17,253 bases of DNA from Bugula neritina (Eukaryota > Animalia > Bryozoa). The stretch covers positions 1 through 17,253 of the forward strand of contig CAXIUT010000276.1 in the NCBI GenBank assembly GCA_964035545.1, read 5' to 3'. Of the stretch, positions 187-17,253 are shown in pieces; the stretch's first letter is position 1; each line of letters begins with the position of its first letter. The translations under genes were made by a program, and so were the position numbers. The notes below the pieces were generated by a model. That model was not told where the DNA came from and searched no databases. It saw only the letters and a list, made by a program, of their open reading frames with translations.

Positions 187-3100
187 ATGGACTCATCTTA
201 GTGTGAACTACACTGTCCAGAGATCCCGCTAGACCATGAATAAACCAAAAAAATTGCTCTTGAACTTGAAAATATCATCAGAAAACAAGTGAATCCTCAC
301 CTAGCCCATGATCTCCAGCAATATTTAATTAATCTAAATGAATAATCTTCAATAATAGAGACAAAATAATTCTACCCACTTGAATTAAAAGATCAAATAA
401 ACATTCTAAGAACCTTTTTAAAAGATAAAAAGAAACATGAAATCAAAGACATGATCAATAAAATTAAAGATATCATCAAAACTATACCTTTGATTTAAAC
501 AAAGTTTTGGGAAGCTGCTGATTTATTTTTAGACTGTTAGAATATAAAATGTTTGCCATTAGAAGAAAGTAAAAACCTGATAAAATTAATAATGAAAAAG
601 GATAATGAGTAGATGATGAGTTATTTAGAGGAACTTTTTAAAAATAAGATAATATACAAAGAATCTTTAGAGGCTGAACTAAAATCAAAAAAATACAAAA
701 ACATTAATAAATTTAAAATCATTAATTAATCAAATATTTAAAAATAGACCAAGTACAGAAAAAAATATATACGAAGAATTGAATTTATCAAGAAAAAATC
801 CAAAGTAACATGAAGGAAAATAACTATAAATATAAAATTAAGATAAAACAAAATGTTTTAGGGGTAAAATAATAAAAGTTAACTATGCAGCAGATCAGTT
901 TAATATCAAAATTATAAACAAAAAGGAAGAAAAAAATATTTTCATAATTCTTAAAGATAGTTATATTCCTTAAATACAAATTTAACAAGAAGATCTTTAC
1001 CCTTTAGTCTAGTATTTAGAAAAAATCAATAAAAATCAAGGAAACTAATTTAATTTTTGTAAAGAAATAAAATTTGCAAAAAATGTTCATCGAAACTTAA
1101 AACTTTCCGAAGGAAAATATCATATAAGAAGAAAAAATAATTAAAAAAAAGGTAAGTATATTATCTAACTACAACATGCAAGCAAAAATAAGGAAATCTA
1201 TCAATTTCATATTGAACCACCAAGTTAGAACAATTCTAACTTAATCAGATGTCATTCTGTTCATTAAAACGAAAATATCTTCATTGATACTGATGAATTT
1301 ATTCGTTCTTATATGATTTCTTAGAAAAATACTTCCTTTTTGAACTATAAAAATTTAGAAAGTAACAAAAAATTAATAAGATTAAAATAGACGAAATAGT
1401 CAAGTGAATTAAATCGTTTCGAACAAATACTGATTATTTAAAGAAAATAAAAAGAATTAGCTGATAAATTACTTACAGATTCTACCTTTAAAAAATAATA
1501 TGAATTTCTCTTTAACAAACTAATAATTGAACAACTGTAAGAAACAGATCTTGATAAAATACTTGGTTTTGTTGATTAAATAATTGATTTAAAAAAGGCA
1601 ATAAAAATATAAAGTTCAAGGCTTTCAACTATTAAATCAATACTAGTGTCTGCTAATTTTCAAAGTCTTGTGAAGACTTAAAAAATAATAAATCATACTA
1701 AACTAATACATTTACTTAAATAGTCATAAGAAGTTATTTCAACATTAAAAAATAAAGACATCATATCATTTTATGGCTTTACAGGGTCTGGGAAAAGCAC
1801 AACTATAAACTATTTTATTGGTCATGATCTTTAATAATTTAATATTGGATTCAATGAAAAAGCTTATAAAATTAAAGAAGAAGAAAAATTATACTAAAAA
1901 AAGAAATAATGCGCATAAATAGGTCATTCCTTTAGTCTGTCTGAAACTTTGTACTCAAAAGGCTATTCACCTCTTAAATAGGCATATTAAAATTTGGATT
2001 AAAAGATGATATAAAATATAAATTTTTGTGATAATCCTGGCTTTCATGATACTAGGGGTTCAGTTTATGAGATATGTACCAGCTTTAGTATGGATCGAGC
2101 TATTGAAGTATGTTCTAAGCTTAAAGCTGTCATTTTAACTATTCCTTATTCTTCTCTTTTTGAAGGAAGAATGAGTTATTTAATGAGTCTTATGAAAAAT
2201 ATTGGATAAGTATTTCCTAATATCTTTGATATTAAGAGTAAAATTTTTGAGAATTTTTATATTTTTGTCACAAAATATAGAAAGTTTAAATTAAAAGAGA
2301 GTTAATAAGAGTTTATAAAGACGAAATCTGAGCTTGAAAATTTTTGTTAAAAAAATCAAGATCAATCGCTAGCATTATTAGAAGCTATTCAGAAGATAAA
2401 GGTTATTAGTTGTATTCTTGAATTATATAAACATTAAAGAATTATCAAAGTTTAACTTGATGACATCTATGAACGTAAAAATATTCTTTAATATATGACA
2501 TTACCTTAAAATGAAATCCAAAAGGAATAATATTCAAAAATAATGTAATCTTCTAATATGAACCATAAATATTCAGATCAATTATCAGATACATCTAGGT
2601 ATTGGAATTAATTTATTTTACTTCCATATATGAAGTCTATTCCTTAAAGAATATAAAATCATGAAAAATAAAGAGTTAATAAAAAAGAAGAAGTCAACTA
2701 AAATGAAGAAACAATCAATCAAATATATGTAAATGTTGATAATTTAAAAAGTCATATTATTAATTTAGAGAAAAAACATCTACCTTAAGTATATAAATAG
2801 ATTTAACGAGTAGAAAAACATAAATTCAATGAGGAGTAGTTACAAATGATTAATAATACAAAAAATAATAAATTTGAGATAAAAAATATTGTAAATTATG
2901 AATAAAATAAGCTTAAAAATATTGAATAAAAAAAGCAGACAATAAATTCAATAACAAATAAATTTAATTTTATCAAGGATAAATAAACTGCAACTTTAGT
3001 TAATGGGGTAAAGCAAATTGATTTATGGAAAAAATAAATTGATCATTATAATAATCGAATAGAAGAACTTTAAAAGATGTATGAGTTAGAAGAACTTTAT

Positions 3101-4167
3101 AAAAAAGAAAATTATCTTGGTTAAGTATTATAGACACATAGTCTTCAGTTGAAGATTTCATCTCATCCTTTCAGATTATTTTAAATTTACACTGTAAAAG
3201 GTTAGCCATTAAAAGTAGGATCGACATAATAAGAAACATTTTCTAATGTTCCACTAGATAATACTTCTTTTAATATTTAATATCCTTCATCTGCAGATCC
3301 ATAAAATTAAATTAAAAATTTTTAGAAAGAAATAAACCTGATAAAATTCAAGTAAAATTGTTATCAACTGTAGAAATGTTACAATTGATAATATTAGTTT
3401 TAATCAAAGCATGAATAAACATATTTTAAAAGTAGTTCAAAAATTTAATAAAACAAATGATAAAAATGATGTCCCTTATGTTAGGATTTATTAGAAAAAA
3501 TAAGGAAAGTTCTTTTATAAAGATTAAATAGATATTTTTAAGGAACAAATAAAAATAGTAACAAAATAAATCTTCTAAAAAAATTAAATCATGAAAAAAA
3601 TAAGTATAATGACCAATAATAATTCATAAGAAATAACACCTTTGATAGTTAAATTGATTTTTAACAAAATTGAATCATAAAAAATATAAAGTTAAAATGA
3701 AAGATATCGAAAAGACCAACAAAATGTTAATAGCAAGTAGTAAATAAACCAAAAAACAGGGAATAATTGAAAGTAAACGTATTAATCTAAAACAAGTCAA
3801 TGATGATATAAAAAAATATGAATAAATGATTCTAAGTGAAAAAGAAAAAGAAAATAAGTATATTTTAAAAGGTCAATAACTTATAAAATAACTCTAATAG
3901 CTTACAAAGAAAAGATAAAGAGAAGAAGAGGAATATAAAAAGTATGCTTATCTGATTTATGATCAATTAAACAACAATATTCCACAGACACTATTTGAAT
4001 TAATTAAGATGACGATGAACTCGAGGATGCAAAAGAAATAATCTTAGCAATTTACAACTAAGGAAGAATTTAGACAAAAATTTTTTAATGATTTTATCAA
4101 GACTTACTCATAGGTTAGATATGACCTCTAGAATAAAGTAAAGTATCATCTTGGTTTAAAAAAATGA
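187..4167 (+). CDS. Large P-loop GTPase (TRAFAC class, AIG1/GIMAP/septin-like) with long coiled-coil regions, about 1300 aa
   Basis: With TAR=Glu: G1 GFTGSGKST (from 1775), G2-like IGHSFSLSET (~1918-1947), G3 FCDNPGFHDTRG (~2024-2059), G4-like IFVTK (~2261-2275). The frame is open from ~620 to 3351. The full model needs a frame change between 617 and 810 (indel or intron), a 22-nt intron at 3352-3373 and a frame change between 3658 and 3768 (probable A-run error). TGA at 4165-4167. The GTPase domain is solid; the gene ends are less certain. Confidence 0.7.
3352..3373 (+). other. Putative 22-nt spliceosomal intron in the GTPase gene
   Basis: GTAAAATTGTTATCAACTGTAG. Its removal joins the upstream frame (which hits TGA shortly after) to the downstream open frame (...IKFK/NVTIDNISF). 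Confidence 0.55.
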
Positions 4168-4376
4168 TTCAAACCATTAAATTATCCTATCAATTATCTT
4201 ATTTGAATAATTATATTCTTTCTATCAAATAATAAAACATTTTAGGTAATAATAATCATCTAAAAAGAAAATAATTAATTCTCAAAAAATAATATATTTT
4301 TTCAAGAAATAATCGGTTTATAAACGACAATAATTTATTCTCATAATAAGTATTGATTTATCAAATAATAACAAAA

Positions 4377-6725
4377 ATGGAATCTTCTGATTCGAAACCT
4401 TCAAGGACAGGTGGACAAGAAGCTTAAAATATCAGAGTTGCAAAAGCAGCACATAGTTTAAGCAACAACTACGATGATGAAAAAGGTTGCCTTGGAGAGA
4501 AACTTTAATAGGTTGAATAAAAAGAGATGAAGGATAGACTTCATAAATATATTGGAGTTATTACATTTTTAGACAACTACAAAGATTTAGGATCAGGTAC
4601 AGGGATTATCATCTCACGTAATTTGGTTTTGACATGTGCTCATAATATCTATGATCATAAAAAAAAATCTCTTTATTCAGGTCTAAAGTTTTATCCTGGA
4701 CATAGAGGAGAATCAAAAAACTTCTACTAAGTTGAGTCATGGTTTTTCCCTAAATAGTACAAGATAGATCATGGATATAAATATGAGTATGCTTTACTAA
4801 AGCTAAAATAAGAATTTCAGAGTTCAGATTTTATTTCTTTAAATATAGGTCAAATGAAAGTCGATAATGAACTAAAAATAGCCATCTATGGATATCCTGA
4901 AGATAAATTCAAATTAATAAGTCATGAAAAAGAACTGTTTCTAGTTAACCAGTGGGGATTGAGTAAAAAAGGAAGAATTATTTAAATAAAAGAAAAAAGT
5001 GGATAAATAATTCACAATATATCAACTTTTCCTGGTCAAAGTGGTGCTCCATTGATCGGAATTGATAAAAACCAAAACCTCGCAATTATTGGTATTCATA
5101 AAGGAGGAATGAAATCAAAAGAAGCAAACATAGCAAGATTGATTACTCCTTAATTGATCACAGTTTTGGAAAAAGAAACTCTTAGTCTTAAAGCCTAAAT
5201 GTTTAAGCCATTGATTGATATTGATTACAGCTAGATAAAAGGTTACTTAAACTTTTAGATACATCCTTTATGGAAAGAAGAGATTTAATCAACTTCAAAA
5301 GTTAATCCAAGAGATCCGAAAGTTTATTATGAGCTAGGAAGTGAACTTTTAAGAATAAATAAAACCAAAGAAGCGATTAAGTGTTATGAAAAAGCAATTG
5401 AGATAAATCCAAACTATAAATAAGCTAACATAAAACTAAAAATTTCTCAATAATAATTGTTAAAAACAAAAAAAATAGGAGAACAAAAAGAATTAAATTA
5501 ATTTAAGATCTAAAAATAAAGATAAAATATTAATTTTGATCAAAAAAAGAAATAATAATCAAAAAATAATGATTATGAGATTGAAAAAGTGAATAAAGAA
5601 AGAAAAAATTAAATTATTTCGGGGTAATAATGAATAAATTAAGATTAAGATTAAAATAGGAAATAAAAATAAAATAAATGGAAAAAAAAGAAGAAATAAT
5701 AGATAATAAGATTCCTATCAAATAATATGGGTATTAAGGTATAATAAAGTTTATGAAAAATGAAACAAAATAAGAGAAAAAACTAAATGTCAGTGAATTA
5801 ACAGTCACCAATACAGTATTTAATCATCAATATAGTGTAAAAAATTAATAACTAAGTTGTACTTAATCATCGATATAGCGTAAAAGATTAATAACTAAGT
5901 TGTATTTAATCATTGATATAGTGTAAAAGATTAATAACAAAGATGTATTTAATCATCAATATAGTGTAAAAGATTAATAACTAAGCTGTATTTAATCATT
6001 GATATAGGGTAAAAGATTAATAACTAAGATGTATTTAATCATCGATATAAGGGTAAAAGATTAATAACTAAGGGGTATTTAATCATCGATATAGAGTAAA
6101 AGATTAATAACTAAGAAGTATTTAATCATCGATATAGTGTAAAAAATTAATAACTAAGATGTATTTAATCATCGATATAGGGTAAAAGATTAATAACTAA
6201 GATGTATTTAATCATCGATATAAGGGTAAAAGATTAATAACTAAGGAGTATTTAATCATGGATATAGAGTAAAAGATTAATAACTAAGATGTATTTAATC
6301 ATCGATATAGGGTAAAAGATTAATAACTAAGCTGTATTTAATCATTGATATAGGGTAAAAGATTAATAACTAAGATGTATTTAATCATTTATATAGCGTA
6401 ATATCATTGTAAAGTAGATGTGGTAAATCATTATTAACAAAGAAATCGTTTGGAGAGGAGTTGTCTAAGTTTCGAAATTTAAAGAAGTTGACCCTTGAAT
6501 TCAAGTAATTTTGGAAGAAAGAAGTCATTGTCTATTCAATTTTGGCTGTTTCAATTCTTGGATCAAGGCTATCAATGAGGATTTAACAAAACTTGAATCA
6601 ATTCAGCTAAATATCTACTAATTATACAAACAGAAAAATCATAAAGATAAGTAGTTGTTGCATGATACAGCTGGACAACTAAATTGAAGAGAAAGGATAT
6701 TCTTAAAGTGAACTACGTGCCTTGA
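4377..6725 (+). CDS. V8/glutamyl-endopeptidase-like serine protease + TPR + charged coiled coil + leucine-rich repeats (multi-intron gene)
   Basis: ATG 4377. Protease motifs GTGIIIS..LVLTCAH (His 4641), YEYALLKL (triad-Asp position is GAG, 4785), IYGYP, STFPGQSGAP (Ser 5040) and IIGIH. TPR DPKVYYELG..AIKCYEKAIEINPNY (~5313-5418). A 20-nt intron at 5624-5643 removes the in-frame TGA at 5631 and restores the frame into LNVSELTVTNT. After the 5816-6442 array come LRR-like KSFGEELSKFRNLKKLTLEF and LTKLESIQLNIY. Further 20-nt introns at 6505-6524 and 6651-6670; TGA at 6723-6725. Confidence 0.8.
5624..5643 (+). other. 20-nt spliceosomal intron
   Basis: GTAATAATGAATAAATTAAG. It contains the in-frame TGA; splicing gives GG|A and an open frame to 5815. 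Confidence 0.8.
5816..6401 (+). repeat. 43-bp tandem array, about 13.6 units; unit = 20-nt GT..AG + 1 nt + 20-nt GT..AG + 2 nt
   Basis: Unit starts at 5816, 5859, 5902, 5945, 5988, 6031, 6075, 6118, 6161, 6204, 6248, 6291, 6334 and 6377. Consensus GTATTTAATCATCGATATAG-N-GTAAAAGATTAATAACTAAG-NN. Units 6 and 10 are 44 bp. Confidence 0.97.
6398..6442 (+). other. Two non-repeat 20-nt introns (6398-6417 and 6423-6442) flanking a 5-nt micro-exon ATGTG
   Basis: GTAATATCATTGTAAAGTAG and GTAAATCATTATTAACAAAG are both exactly 20 nt and GTA..AG. Splicing yields C|AT GTG|AAA TCG = H-V-K-S, in the LRR frame. Confidence 0.65.
6505..6524 (+). other. 20-nt spliceosomal intron
   Basis: GTAATTTTGGAAGAAAGAAG. 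It falls right after the LRR strand LTLEF and moves the frame onto the next LRR (LTKLESIQLNIY). Confidence 0.7.
6651..6670 (+). other. 20-nt spliceosomal intron
   Basis: GTAGTTGTTGCATGATACAG. Splicing extends the frame to TGA 6723; without it the protein would end at an earlier TGA (~6685). Confidence 0.55.
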
Positions 6726-6903
6726 ATAAAATAAAATCAATTAATTAACATTATTTCTTGAGAGTAAAGTGTATCTATTAACAGTCCAGATAAGTAGACA
6801 CTTGTTGTATTGGTGATTATACTATCTTTAAATACTAAAAATATCATATCATTAAAATTAGATAATATCTTTGAAGATAATATATTTTGTATTTTATAAT
6901 CTT

Positions 6904-7560: not shown

Positions 7561-9036
7561 TCAGTGTTTATCACCTAAACCAGAACACTTAGGATGAACT
7601 GTCCTAGTATTGAGCATAATCGATGTTGCACTTGCTCTCTATTCAGGTTCAATTGTTCTTTTGCTTACCATTTAATACTTAGACTCTGTTTGAATATACT
7701 TAGTTATTTATTTGAACATTCCCTCTTGCTTATGACTACTTGTATTAAAAGGCATTAAAGTTTTAATAGGCGTGTATATTTAATCTTTCGAACAGAACTG
7801 TGAAACAGTTTCTTTGGGAGCCATTCTATCCAATTTAAATTTATCCATTTTTGCTTGTTTGTATTATCTAGGATTAGTTGCTATTGCTGATTTTGTCGAA
7901 CTGAAAAGATGCCTTGCTTCTAGATATATATCATGGATCTTTTTGGCATCAGATGTGGAAGGATTGCGGCTGTGAACTGTCTAATATGCTGAGTTGTTGT
8001 GAGTGTGACCAGTTTCGATTACTGATGGGTTGTGAGAATGACGACTGTCTTTTGGTAATTTATTGTTAGTCTATTTTTGTTTTAAGCAGTTGATTGCTTT
8101 TTTTGGAGTTTTTATATGTATTTTGTTCTATTTGGTGTTATTTTCTAGCTAGATTCCGAGTTATTATACTGATATTCTTTGTTATTTTTCATATTTTAGC
8201 ATTTTTTTAAGCAAATCTTTTATCTTTATATCATAATCTATTCTCTATATATCTTCATGAATCTACTTAACTCTTTTCTTTATCTTTTCCTCTCTAAAAA
8301 TAAATTTATTCTATCCAAATACTATATCAACAATCTAGCTCTAGAACTTAACTTATTTCCCTAGACACATTTCCAACACAACCATACCAAGCCCAAAGAT
8401 CTGACTCTTGCAAGTAACTGTGACATATTCTTAAGTTCCAACAATTTTCAATAACTCTGGAGCAATTCCATAATCTCTGCAAAGCATCATTTAATCAAAC
8501 TCTTAATAGAACCTCAAAGGATGACAAATCTACGAATCTTCTTCTTGAATCAACATGTACCTTCCAGCTTTATTTCGTAAAATAGATTGTTTACATATAT
8601 GATAATATTTGACATTATGATCTTCTGATAGTTTCAGAGCCAAAGTACAATGTCTTAGCAAAGTTAATATTTATTCAGAAGTGTAAGGTGTAGTTTGAAC
8701 TTTACGATAATACTGTTCTAAATGTAGAGTTGTAACAAAATGTTAATAAAATATTTACTGTTGTAATGATCTTGAACAAATTCCACTTTAACCATCTTGT
8801 CCATATACTTTTTTCAATATATGCCAGCATCCAGCATGATTTTGTTTCCCATTTAGCCATACTATCTTCCTATTGATCTCTTCTATCACTGTCTCACATC
8901 GCTGTTTCATCATGCATAGTTGACTTTTTCCTCCAAAAGTGACTTATACTTATATTAGTGGTCCTAGCAGGGGATGGAGGGTTAGTTTTTTTTGTTGGTA
9001 TTTGATTTTAAGTTGTTCTGATGGTTCGTTTCCCAT
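7561..9036 (-). CDS. Protein-kinase-fold pseudokinase with predicted N-myristoylation, 491 aa
   Basis: Uninterrupted frame beginning MGNEPS. Kinase C-lobe motifs: IFYEHF (hinge), YTSEEILTLL, GIAPELL, KSQIFGLGMVVLEM and LLKKMLKYEKEQRIS. The catalytic loop is degenerate (YYHICKQSIL) and there is no DFG. Confidence 0.8.
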
Positions 9037-9123
9037 AGAATTCGAGTTAGTATATTATACAATACTAGAACTTCAATTGATATACAATTCAAATATAACT
9101 ACAAAAATAATCTAATTTAAATA

Positions 9124-11701
9124 ATGCTGCATGAATTACTCTTCGCCTTGAAAGGAAAAACAGCATCAATAATAAAAAATACAGGTCATTAATTTACTAT
9201 TGATTCTAGCACTTCTATTCTCACAGAACCAGAAGCTGCGATGATAAGTGAAATTGCACAGACAGGATATTATTATCTTCAATTGAACAGTTTTGTGGAA
9301 AGCGAGATGACTGAGATATCATTTGGCGATATAAATAAAAATCCAAGTGTGTATCGTAAAGCTTTTGCTTATGGATTAAAAAAAGCATTGGCATAATATG
9401 AATAAGTAATCAATACGATTGAGAATGATTTTCTTGCTAGTAAATATTTTACTTTTGGCAACTTGAAATCTCTATTGACAAAATACAACATCATCATGAA
9501 AGAATTATGTTCTATTTTAGAAAAAATAATTAGTTAGAAATATCGAGGATCGACTATTATTGATTTACTATGGTAGTATAGTCATACTGGTTCTTTGTGG
9601 TTGAAATAGTGGATAAGTATTATTTTGAAAGAATGTCAAACTGTGTTTATCAATCAGGTGATTGCTTGGATTTTGCATGGATAGATTATAGATTGTTAGG
9701 GGTAGTTTTTTATTCATCGAGTTGTGCAGGTGGCTCAGTAGAGAGTTCAGTTTAGAAGTTAGAATAAAAAAAAAGTTTAAATGAATGCTTGGGATATCTA
9801 TACGCTTGATGGGTAGTTGGTTCCTCAAAGTATAGTTGGATTGGCAACGGCAGTAAAGATACTATTTATTGGCAAAAGTGTTAAAATACTAAGAAGTGCT
9901 GGTAAGATATCAGCCATCCCTTCATAGCAAATAATAAAAGATCTACGTTGTTTATTCCGATAAACTTACAGTCAGATGTTATTTTAAAGCGTTATCTAGA
10001 AAATTCGTTCAGCCATAGCCTCCTAGATGATAAATCTGATCATCGGCTAGCAAAACCTAATAAAATAGTTATAACTGATCAATGATTACTATTTAATGCA
10101 GAAGGGAGATTTCTATCATCATTTTTTATAGTAATCGCATTGTCTGACCCATATAACTAATAAATAGAAATTGCAAAGAAAAGTCAATGAGACTTGTTTG
10201 CCTAATGCTTTTATGCGGTTGGGTTAGTCAGAGGAGGGCAAGAAGGTGAGTTTTTAGATCAGGGCGAATGGTTTTAGTTATGTTGGTTTTAAAAATTTGG
10301 TTGATATCTGTCCTGTGGGTGGTGTTGATTTGGTTGAGGGTAAGTATGTGAGGTTGACGTCTTCTGGTGGTGGTCTTTGGCATCGTCGCAAGCAAATCGT
10401 TTAAAATAATTTCGTGGTGATGTTTAGTGTTTGTTTCAAGCGATCTAAATCTTTGTTCAGAGGGAGAAGATAGAATAGTAAGGAGTTGATGAATAATACG
10501 ATAGCTTTGGTGATTCAGAATCAAAAATAAATAACTGGAGCAGTCTATGACAATCCTGCCAATTTGAGTAGAATCAATGAGTACATAGCTATTTCTGTTG
10601 GATATCGTTATAGCAAATAATAACGTAATTACTAATCTTTGATATCTGTTAGTTATCGAAATTAGAAGAAGTATCATAAACCTATTGATATCGGCCAATT
10701 ACTACCAAAAAGAATTAATTTTATTGATGAAGGTATATATTTTATAAAAGTTGCTTATCAAAATTAGATTCTTAAGATATCAGTCAACCCTTTGAATTCA
10801 GTCTAGATGGCATAGTAAAACACCCTCAAAGTAGATAGTTTACGTATGTCGAGTTATTTGAATTTATAGATGCAAAAAGGAAGTATAGGTTTATTATCGA
10901 ATTTGACTGATCCATGTTGTCAGGTATAAATCTAGCAGTGGTAAATGGTTTGTAAACCGGCTAATTACTATACTGATTTCTTTACTGATTTGCATCTTAA
11001 ATTAGATATCCAATGGCCTTTGAATCTCATCTTGACGAGTGATTTGATGTAGGTTTTTTCTAGGATAAATAAATTTCTTTTTCCTATTAGGCAGATTCAG
11101 GTGTAAATCTAGATGTTGTGGGTGAGAATTCCTCGGAAGATCAAGGAGGCTAGGAAGGAGTAGTTGATGGAAGAGAGGGAGTTGAATATGTTTGAGAGGA
11201 ATTTGAGTGGGACGAGATCGAGGATGAACATGGTGTTGAATAATTTATGGAGGTATTATCAATTTGACGTGATAGCTACTGCTTGGCTCAAATTGAAAAC
11301 GAGTATCGCATAGAGCAACGATTTCTAAGGTAAATAATCATCAAATATAGATGTGATAAGGATGATAACAAAATATGCGAACACAATCCAGACTATGTTC
11401 TTTTTCAATGCTATTAAAATTCAGAGATATATTTATGATATACTTCGTTATGTGCGTAATTTTATCATATTTTTTTAGAGGTAGTTATTCTGTTAATGAT
11501 AGGTTATAGGGGTAAAACGTGATTGACGGACGAAGCAAGCGTGATCACAAGAGCATAGACTAGTAATTCAGAAGAGTAGTGAATGAATTTTATAAATTGT
11601 TGAAGGAGTTATCGAGAAATAGCAATTCTGCGCATTTGTTTCATCTGACGCAGAGGATGTAGGGGTGTGTGGAGGAGAAAAATACCTTTTTGGTTTATTG
11701 A
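9124..11701 (+). CDS. TUBGCP4: Gamma-tubulin complex component 4 (Spc97/Spc98 family) with an internal lectin-like insertion
   Basis: N-terminus MLHELLFALKG, plus SVYRKAFAYGL, QVIAWILHG, KILFIGKSV, DYYLMQKGDFYHHFL, IQWPLNLIL and NNLWRYYQFDVI, match GCP4 motifs. Introns at 11330-11350 and 11481-11502; TGA at 11699-11701. Confidence 0.88.
11330..11350 (+). other. 21-nt intron in GCP4 (3n, no stop)
   Basis: GTAAATAATCATCAAATATAG. AT-rich; removal gives SNDFE-D-VIRM, which fits GCP4 spacing. Confidence 0.65.
11481..11502 (+). other. 22-nt intron in GCP4
   Basis: GTAGTTATTCTGTTAATGATAG. It contains the in-frame TGA at 11497; removal is required to reach the C-terminal FYKLL...HLFHLTQRM helix. 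Confidence 0.85.
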
Positions 11702-14355: not shown

Positions 14356-17039
<2,684 letters not shown>

Positions 17040-17179: not shown

Positions 17180-17253
17180 GGGGGTTGGGGGTTGGGGTTG
17201 GGGTTGGGGTTGGGTTGGGGTTGGGGTGGGTTGGGGTTGGGGTTGGGGTTGGG
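17180..17253. repeat. Right telomere, (TTGGGG)n
   Basis: G4T2 repeats to the end of the sequence, with a few one-base irregularities. Confidence 0.98.

Follow-up and report, generated by a model that had tools for sequence, protein, structure and literature searches.

The array and the gene around it

The window, a contig of 17,253 bases (CAXIUT010000276.1) in the Bugula neritina genome assembly GCA_964035545.1, began with C4A2 repeats (1-81) and ended with G4T2 repeats (17181-17253), showing that it is a complete, small, telomere-to-telomere macronuclear chromosome of a ciliate. On its forward strand (5816-6442) we located a tandem array of 43-bp units inside what appears to be a single protein-coding gene. 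The array is probably a chain of spliceosomal introns in that gene (our estimate of the probability is about 0.6), in which exons of one and two bases would together supply one codon per repeat unit.

Exon 1 of the proposed gene (4377-5623, plus strand; frame 0, i.e., position mod 3 = 0) encoded, in this order, a serine protease region of trypsin type, a TPR repeat and a tail rich in Lys and Glu. When it was translated with TAA and TAG as Glu, a Pfam search with the stop-free pieces returned TPR_1 (E = 1.8e-11) and, on a fragment, a weak match to Trypsin_2 (E = 0.022); the codon-model frame score was positive over 4360-5530. Read plainly, this open reading frame ended at a TGA (5631-5633). A putative 20-nt intron (GTAATAATGAATAAATTAAG; 5624-5643, plus strand) covered that stop, and its removal would join frame 0 to frame 2. 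The intron carried an A at position 15, had a weight-matrix score of 9.6 and was flagged blind by a frame-shift screen for 20-nt introns. The codon model preferred frame 0 up to ~5530 and frame 2 from ~5620, and after the array only frame 2 was acceptable. An assembly indel joining the two open reading frames was ruled out: a contig from an independent sequencing run (X1) matched 5565-5818 with 0 differences, indicating that the junction is not an assembly error.

Exon 2 (5644-5815, plus strand) was a Lys/Glu-rich linker of 57 codons that closed on a complete codon (..ACC AAT ACA); it was open in frame 2, which was also its best codon-model frame. The stretch 5440-5815 was very AT-rich. The last exon (6443-6871, plus strand) held 142 codons (KSFGEELSKFRNLKKLTLEF...) and the stop TGA (6869-6871) in frame 2, with the other two frames scoring strongly negative. 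In frame 2, ~200 codons that flank the array and lie outside the repeat were free of TGA. When all 30 introns were removed in silico, an open frame of 1893 nt (630 codons) ran from the ATG at 4377 to the TGA at 6869-6871, which alone is weak support since the unspliced array is open too. The array spliced in silico was reduced to 45 nt (TTTCTTTATTCTGATGGGAAATATGATGGAAATGCTGATCATGTG) between 5815 and 6443, ~582 nt shorter than the DNA, and its in-frame product was 15 residues (FLYSDGKYDGNADHV). No LRR profile matched the part downstream of the array when three stop-free pieces of only 21-25 residues were compared with Pfam, leaving an LRR identity unconfirmed. Splicing of an intron-like motif within the last exon (6505-6524) would open an alternative frame that also has an LRR-like reading (..IKAINEDLTKLESIQLNIY..).

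Structure of the array

The array consisted of 29 GT-AG blocks on the plus strand, 27 of 20 nt and two of 21 nt (6031-6051 and 6204-6224), in which type B blocks (GTATTTAATCATCGATATAG) alternated with type A blocks (GTAAAAGATTAATAACTAAG). The blocks were separated by 14 putative exons of one base (5836, 5879, 5922, 5965, 6008, 6052, 6095, 6138, 6181, 6225, 6268, 6311, 6354 and 6397), 13 of two bases (5857-8, 5900-1, 5943-4, 5986-7, 6029-30, 6073-4 and 6116-7, then 6159-60, 6202-3, 6246-7, 6289-90, 6332-3 and 6375-6) and one of five bases. A register cut of 5816-6419 gave 14 units, 12 of 43 bp and two of 44 bp. Spacer lengths were constant in every unit, at 1 and 2 with a sum of 3. Retention of either 21-nt B block would add seven in-frame codons without a stop.

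The array blocks were ~98% alike, with a higher-order period of 173 bp (four units) and decay at the array edges. The decayed 3' end (6398-6442, plus strand) was made up of block GTAATATCATTGTAAAGTAG (6398-6417), exon ATGTG (6418-6422) and block GTAAATCATTATTAACAAAG (6423-6442). About half of the bases in these two end blocks differed from the repeat, yet both kept the 20-nt length, GTA, the A at position 15 (A15) and WAG. A last intron of 23 nt in the original prediction was replaced by the five-base exon followed by a 20-nt intron, with the frame unchanged. No second copy of the array block sequence, the linker or the last exon was detected in the 216-Mb assembly, and an exact-pattern scan of metagenome contigs gave no match.

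Variation at the spacer bases

Alignment of the units, with entropy calculated for each column, placed most of the variation on the spacers. Column 22, the one base that separates ..TAG from GTAAAA, had an entropy of 1.84 bits (G6, T4, C2, A2); columns 43 and 44, the two-base spacer, had 1.66 bits (A8, T2, C2, G2) and 0.95 bits (T11, A2, G1), and most remaining columns were invariant. All four bases were therefore present at the one-base spacer, as originally described, and also at column 43, where the two-base spacer begins. The 14 units carried 11 distinct spacer triplets, with three to four alleles per spacer column.

In units 1-13, 16 of the 39 exon bases were non-consensus, in line with the ~16 of the earlier hand count. 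The blocks of these units held 10 substitutions and two one-base insertions in ~520 bases, close to the ~14 intron-base changes counted before, in which the two segment labels are the reverse of ours. Comparison of 16/39 with 10/520 gave p = 3.8e-14 (Fisher exact test), and the excess per site on the three spacer columns was 18-fold. Because the units share ancestry, minimum numbers of events were also counted; at least 8 fell on the 3 spacer columns and at least 7 on the 40 block columns (binomial p = 2.3e-6). Between the newest four-unit duplicates (units 5-8 and 9-12), 4 of 12 exon bases differed, compared with 3 of 161 block bases (p = 4e-4). Changes by codon position numbered 8, 6 and 3 at the first, second and third positions, an order that is the reverse of purifying selection but rests on small numbers.

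The concentration of change on the bases between AG and GT thus held up, but confinement to exactly these bases did not. The CG of block B (columns 13-14) had changed six times (TG three times, CA twice, GG once), and column 13 (1.2 bits) was more variable than column 44. This CG (5828-5829 and equivalents) is the only one in the unit and forms a secondary hotspot, as if by CpG-type transitions. The argument that a neutral minisatellite should not confine change in this way was too strong, because such confinement, in two-allele form, is seen in a plain satellite from this genome. This control, a 29-bp satellite of 76 units (contig C11, 1-10000, minus strand 2475-4690), varied in 5 columns only; these columns were strictly two-allele and defined four main unit types. 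The control satellite ended at an internal C4A2 tract and resumed beyond it, and internal telomere tracts were seen in many ciliate contigs of the assembly (e.g., C10, C11, C14 and C15). What is unusual about the array is the presence of three to four alleles exactly at the AG_GT spacers, not the confinement as such. Unlike a neutral minisatellite, the array showed variation that was neither spread over the unit nor sorted into two-allele subtypes, and it lay between frame-compatible coding stretches.

Intron rule of the ciliate contigs

Ordinary introns were surveyed in ~190 kb of other ciliate contigs together with the window, in which the array was masked. The motif GTA..A..WAG occurred 138 times at a length of 20 nt and ~65 times at each other length between 14 and 40 nt. 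A codon model was used to ask whether the best coding frames upstream and downstream of a motif differed as removal of the segment would predict. Frame-consistent motifs numbered 38 at 20 nt compared with 1-8 at other lengths not divisible by three, and the same frame test with bare GT..AG gave 124 at 20 nt compared with 32-73 at the others. The frame-supported introns started with GTA, were AT-rich (a mean of 11 of the 14 interior bases), had A15 in 79% of cases and ended in TAG (77%) or AAG (23%). In an HSP70 gene on contig C291, a gap of the size of a 20-nt intron lay between the two matched parts; HSP70 genes of the animal host were retrieved along with it and left out of the analysis.

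The blocks of the array were compared with this rule. All 29 blocks and the intron at 5624-5643 started with GT and ended with AG. Blocks A and B were exactly 20 nt long, with GTA, A15 and an AAG or TAG end, and 12 (A) and 11 (B) of their 14 interior bases were A or T. Weight-matrix scores were 11.5-13.8 for B and 8.8-9.6 for A; the median of the introns from which the matrix was built was 13.3. Adjacent introns (gap ≤12 nt) were found as only one other pair in the sample of ordinary ciliate DNA, indicating that chains occur locally and not as a general trait.

Chains at other loci

The assembly was searched for the alternation of AG-N-GT and AG-NN-GT at intron spacing. Apart from simple repeats in animal contigs, the matches fell on the ciliate contigs C209, C305, C147 and C274, i.e., at least four other loci. 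Those on C147 (G000:C147:61501-61549, minus strand) and C274 (G000:C274:15191-15260, plus strand) each consisted of one pattern match that spanned two or three blocks.

The C209 chain (G000:C209:12673-15714, minus strand; 408-2386 of the oriented locus) contained 84 GT-AG blocks, among them 45 of 20 nt, 25 of 21 nt and 10 of 22 nt. Its exons included 37 of 1 nt and 34 of 2 nt, and its first exon was signal-peptide-like. AGNGT occurred 39 times and AGNNGT 33 times, compared with 6 for AGGT and 2 for AGNNNGT. The intron interiors were no more alike than predicted, being 42% identical where base composition leads one to expect 37.5%. The codon-usage score of the micro-exons did not differ usefully from that of a shifted pairing (-0.04 vs -0.14). 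A few blocks started with GC or lacked the G, and block similarities at offsets of ~25-29 blocks hinted at an old duplication of a module of ~14 codons.

The C305 chain (G000:C305:17677-20719, plus strand; 957-2717 of the locus) was built of ~75 dissimilar GT-AG blocks of 20-23 nt, most commonly 21-22 nt, separated by alternating 1- and 2-nt exons. An ATG and a signal peptide were in frame with the chain. In-silico splicing gave a 67-residue product with six Cys and placed a TGA exactly at the end of the chain; the unspliced reading stopped after 66 codons. The spacer columns had ~2 bits of entropy. Its introns came in two phase-linked flavours, A-rich at positions 6-8 after a 1-nt exon and T-rich at positions 5-8 after a 2-nt exon; in the window, blocks A and B share this polarity. 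No contiguous relative of the C305 peptide was found in the genome with a 34-residue query, a result that proves nothing.

In both C209 and C305, sequence had diverged while GT, AG, length and the 1/2 alternation were kept, which fits selection for splicing and not the decay of a neutral satellite. The window array seems to be a young representative of this class of chains.

Sequencing runs

Contigs from four independent public runs (two organism labels, two studies) lay on the edges and flanks of the array, showing that it is not an assembly artefact. These contigs covered genes and spacers alike, as DNA would. At both array edges (5774-5907 and 6356-6506), contigs differed from the window by 6-7%; the locus, including both edges of the array, is thus shown to exist in related strains. 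No differing letters fell inside the array among those listed, and the runs neither confirmed nor contradicted individual variable bases.

Interpretation of the array

If the array is an intron chain, the spliceosome of this ciliate would remove introns of essentially one length, 20 nt, that begin with GTA, carry a branch-point-like A15 and end in TAG or AAG. Each repeat unit would consist of two introns (B and A), and their removal would leave one base and two bases, or one codon. The array would then insert its 15 residues between the part with the protease, TPR and linker and the C-terminal part of 142 residues. The near-identity of the 40 intron bases could mean that the array is young, that it has been homogenised by unequal exchange, or both, and the codons would have been pushed or held apart by selection on the peptide. 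Given splicing, variation would be expected to sit on the spacers because a unit would code through these three bases alone. The constant 1/2 spacers, in every unit of the window as well as in C209 and C305, favour a coding role of the putative micro-exons.

The excess of change on the exon bases has been attributed to diversifying selection or targeted mutation, which is one of several readings; others fit as well. Selection after duplication, in which a new codon is a copy at first and is later driven apart, is weakly supported because the excess is present even between the youngest duplicates. Alternatively, unequal exchange could keep the units alike while ordinary selection keeps the codons distinct, by analogy with transcription activator-like (TAL) effector repeats. 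Near-identical intron copies could also have spread into pre-existing codons, which would directly explain the variable spacers but leaves unexplained the strict alternation and the rare features common to units 6 and 10.

The splice model of the original prediction gained support from the 20-nt rule, the fit of the blocks, the gene context and the sister loci; splicing itself is something that we infer from sequence. Several observations weigh against an intron chain. Type A blocks score low within the range of the introns (9.0), and two B blocks are 21 nt long, a length without excess in ordinary introns, yet common (21-22 nt) in the C305 chain. Motifs of 20 nt were not depleted in read-through coding context (14, compared with 13-22 in the same residue class), indicating that the motif alone is insufficient for splicing. 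The unspliced array is open and in frame (frame 2), and its 627 nt are a multiple of three. Coding signal in the last exon was weak under the codon model, and no homologue of this exon was detected with Pfam (on short stop-free pieces) or in a DNA search of the assembly. The last exon also holds two intron-like 20-nt GTA..A..AG motifs, at 6505-6524 (score 9.9) and 6651-6670 (9.6), which may reflect alternative splicing or be plain decoys. In run searches of public data, no run recorded as RNA contained the locus, and no splice joints across the array occurred in the contigs of the four DNA-like runs. Finally, we found no description of chains of 1-2-nt exons in ciliates or elsewhere in the literature searched, which is not proof of their absence.

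Some of these observations would agree with a real minisatellite that expanded in the gene and is not spliced as a chain, so that it either is translated as an insert of 209 residues or has disabled the gene, the GT and AG edges having come from one amplified intron-exon-intron piece. The array is unique and young, its unspliced frame is open with a length divisible by three, the coding signal downstream is weak, and a motif is no guarantee of splicing. However, a period of 43 bp cannot hold one frame per unit, which leaves three to four alleles at the exact spacers unexplained; the blocks, decayed end blocks included, fit the intron rule in length, GTA and A15, and C209 and C305 have kept the architecture after their blocks diverged. 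An insert of this kind is unlikely in our view. A non-coding satellite, lying in a spacer between a protease-TPR gene that ends at the TGA at 5631 and a small downstream gene, would owe its pattern to unit subtypes and mutation hotspots. It would be in keeping with the AT-richness of 5440-5815, with the stop that frame 0 meets at 5631-5633 if unspliced, and with a genome in which another satellite confines its variation to few columns. This explanation is distinctly improbable, as a canonical 20-nt intron lies exactly over the stop and joins two frames with better coding scores, the non-repeat codons of frame 2 run on without TGA, and the two-allele control has four unit types where the array has 11 triplets in 14 units.

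The array might also be transcribed and then excised in large pieces, either as a single intron of 627 nt or with donors paired variably to any later acceptors, and the spacers would rarely or variably be included in the protein. Since each block supplies both a donor and an acceptor, numerous pairings are conceivable on formal grounds, and all those that skip entire units preserve the frame. In the range of 14-40 nt, however, ordinary introns showed no length class but 20 nt, which points to a length-measuring mechanism, and discarded spacers would leave both their constant lengths and their excess variation unexplained; we consider removal in large pieces very unlikely. Sequencing or assembly errors in the repeat are hardly credible as the source of the variable bases. 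A conserved helicase gene of the assembly is indeed interrupted by single-base frame breaks, and the telomere repeats are imperfect, but errors of this kind are indels at base runs, whereas the array has substitutions to all four bases at fixed columns. The variation is also partly common to duplicated four-unit blocks, and independent runs contain words of the array and touch its edges.

Relation to known systems

Very short introns of fixed length are established in ciliates (15-16 nt in Stentor and Blepharisma), and intron lengths are narrowly distributed in Paramecium and three peritrichs (PMC13685798). For the three peritrich genomes, that 2026 comparative paper says only that the distributions are narrow. 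The array blocks resemble these introns in having GT-AG ends, a near-constant and very short length and an A at a fixed distance from the 3' end (here 20 nt and A15). They differ in number and arrangement, since most genes in those reports have no or few introns, whereas the array would have dozens that abut with exons of 1-2 nt. One-nucleotide micro-exons in the plant genes APC11 and VPS55 are spliced in, as validated by reverse transcription PCR (PMC8831610), showing that a spliceosome can handle a 1-nt exon. Those genes share with our reading of the array a single coding base between two introns. The plant micro-exons are isolated, conserved and placed between long introns; in the array, 14 exons of one base and 13 of two bases would follow one another within a tandem repeat, and they are variable.

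The array is like an ordinary minisatellite with higher-order structure in its head-to-tail 43-bp units, its 173-bp period of four units and its decayed edges, but unlike one in its columns with three to four alleles at AG_GT spacers and its position between in-frame exons. TAL-effector repeats are near-identical units in which a few hypervariable positions carry function. The array is like them in its near-identical units and in variation at few fixed positions; unlike the array, in which 40 of 43 bases would be intron, TAL units (102 bp, 34 residues) are coding throughout. Introns can be gained by tandem duplication of a segment containing AGGT, and recursive splicing makes use of a zero-length exon. 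These processes resemble the array in that duplicated splice signals make new GT..AG intervals and adjacent sites are used successively. Their outcome is a single new intron, or a long intron taken out step by step, not a stable array with one codon per repeat.

Organism, assembly and neighbouring genes

The assembly (216 Mb, 321 contigs) was of mixed content. Its multi-megabase contigs carried multi-exon genes in the standard code, indicating that they are animal, and many small telomere-bearing contigs used a reassigned code. The window is therefore ciliate DNA within the genome assembly of an animal and should carry a flag to that effect; the ciliate contigs stem from a co-assembled passenger that is probably an epibiont. 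The reassigned code was read from a DHX16/PRP2-like DEAH helicase (~14370-17036), in which TAG or TAA stood at expected conserved Glu positions (D-E-A-H-E-R-S, G-Q-E-E-I-E and V-P-E-I-Q-R) and TGA was the sole stop codon. This suggests a code of the peritrich type with TAA and TAG as Glu (NCBI table 30). To our knowledge this code is known from peritrichs alone, and the assignment of the window to that group is deduced from the code and is not a taxonomic test.

The helicase reading (14370-17036) was interrupted by four to five single-base frame breaks (near 15290, 15530, 15555, 16455 and 16790). Most of them were located at runs of A, and one came directly ahead of an in-frame AAA-TGA; either indels in the assembly or genuine frameshifts could account for them. 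The other genes on the chromosome were intron-poor. They included an intron-free, gamma-tubulin-complex-like open reading frame of ~790 codons (9130-11500, plus strand) and a protein-kinase-like one (7564-9072, minus strand), both named by eye only.

Significance

If the array is spliced, no coding sequence known to us would be more extremely fragmented, with ~93% of the array being intron and strictly alternating exons of one and two bases. It would imply a fixed-length ("ruler") spliceosome able to process dozens of adjacent introns and would open a direct way to study the recognition of tiny introns. It would also account for the failure to be expected of gene finders and read mappers on genes of this kind. 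A tandem repeat that changes only its codon is a simple route to a longer and more diverse peptide. We suggest tentatively, at somewhat less than even odds, that this ciliate writes parts of its genes codon by codon through a length-measuring spliceosome. The window would hold a young, homogeneous cassette that adds one residue per 43-bp repeat, its codon bases changing more than 10 times faster per site than its introns; such a cassette would be an expandable, hypervariable peptide module, and its older relatives would be the diverged chains for secreted Cys-rich peptides. The young array of the window and the old, diverged chains form a series in which the origin of such structures can be studied, and this series may bear on whether introns are homogenised while the exons between them are held apart.

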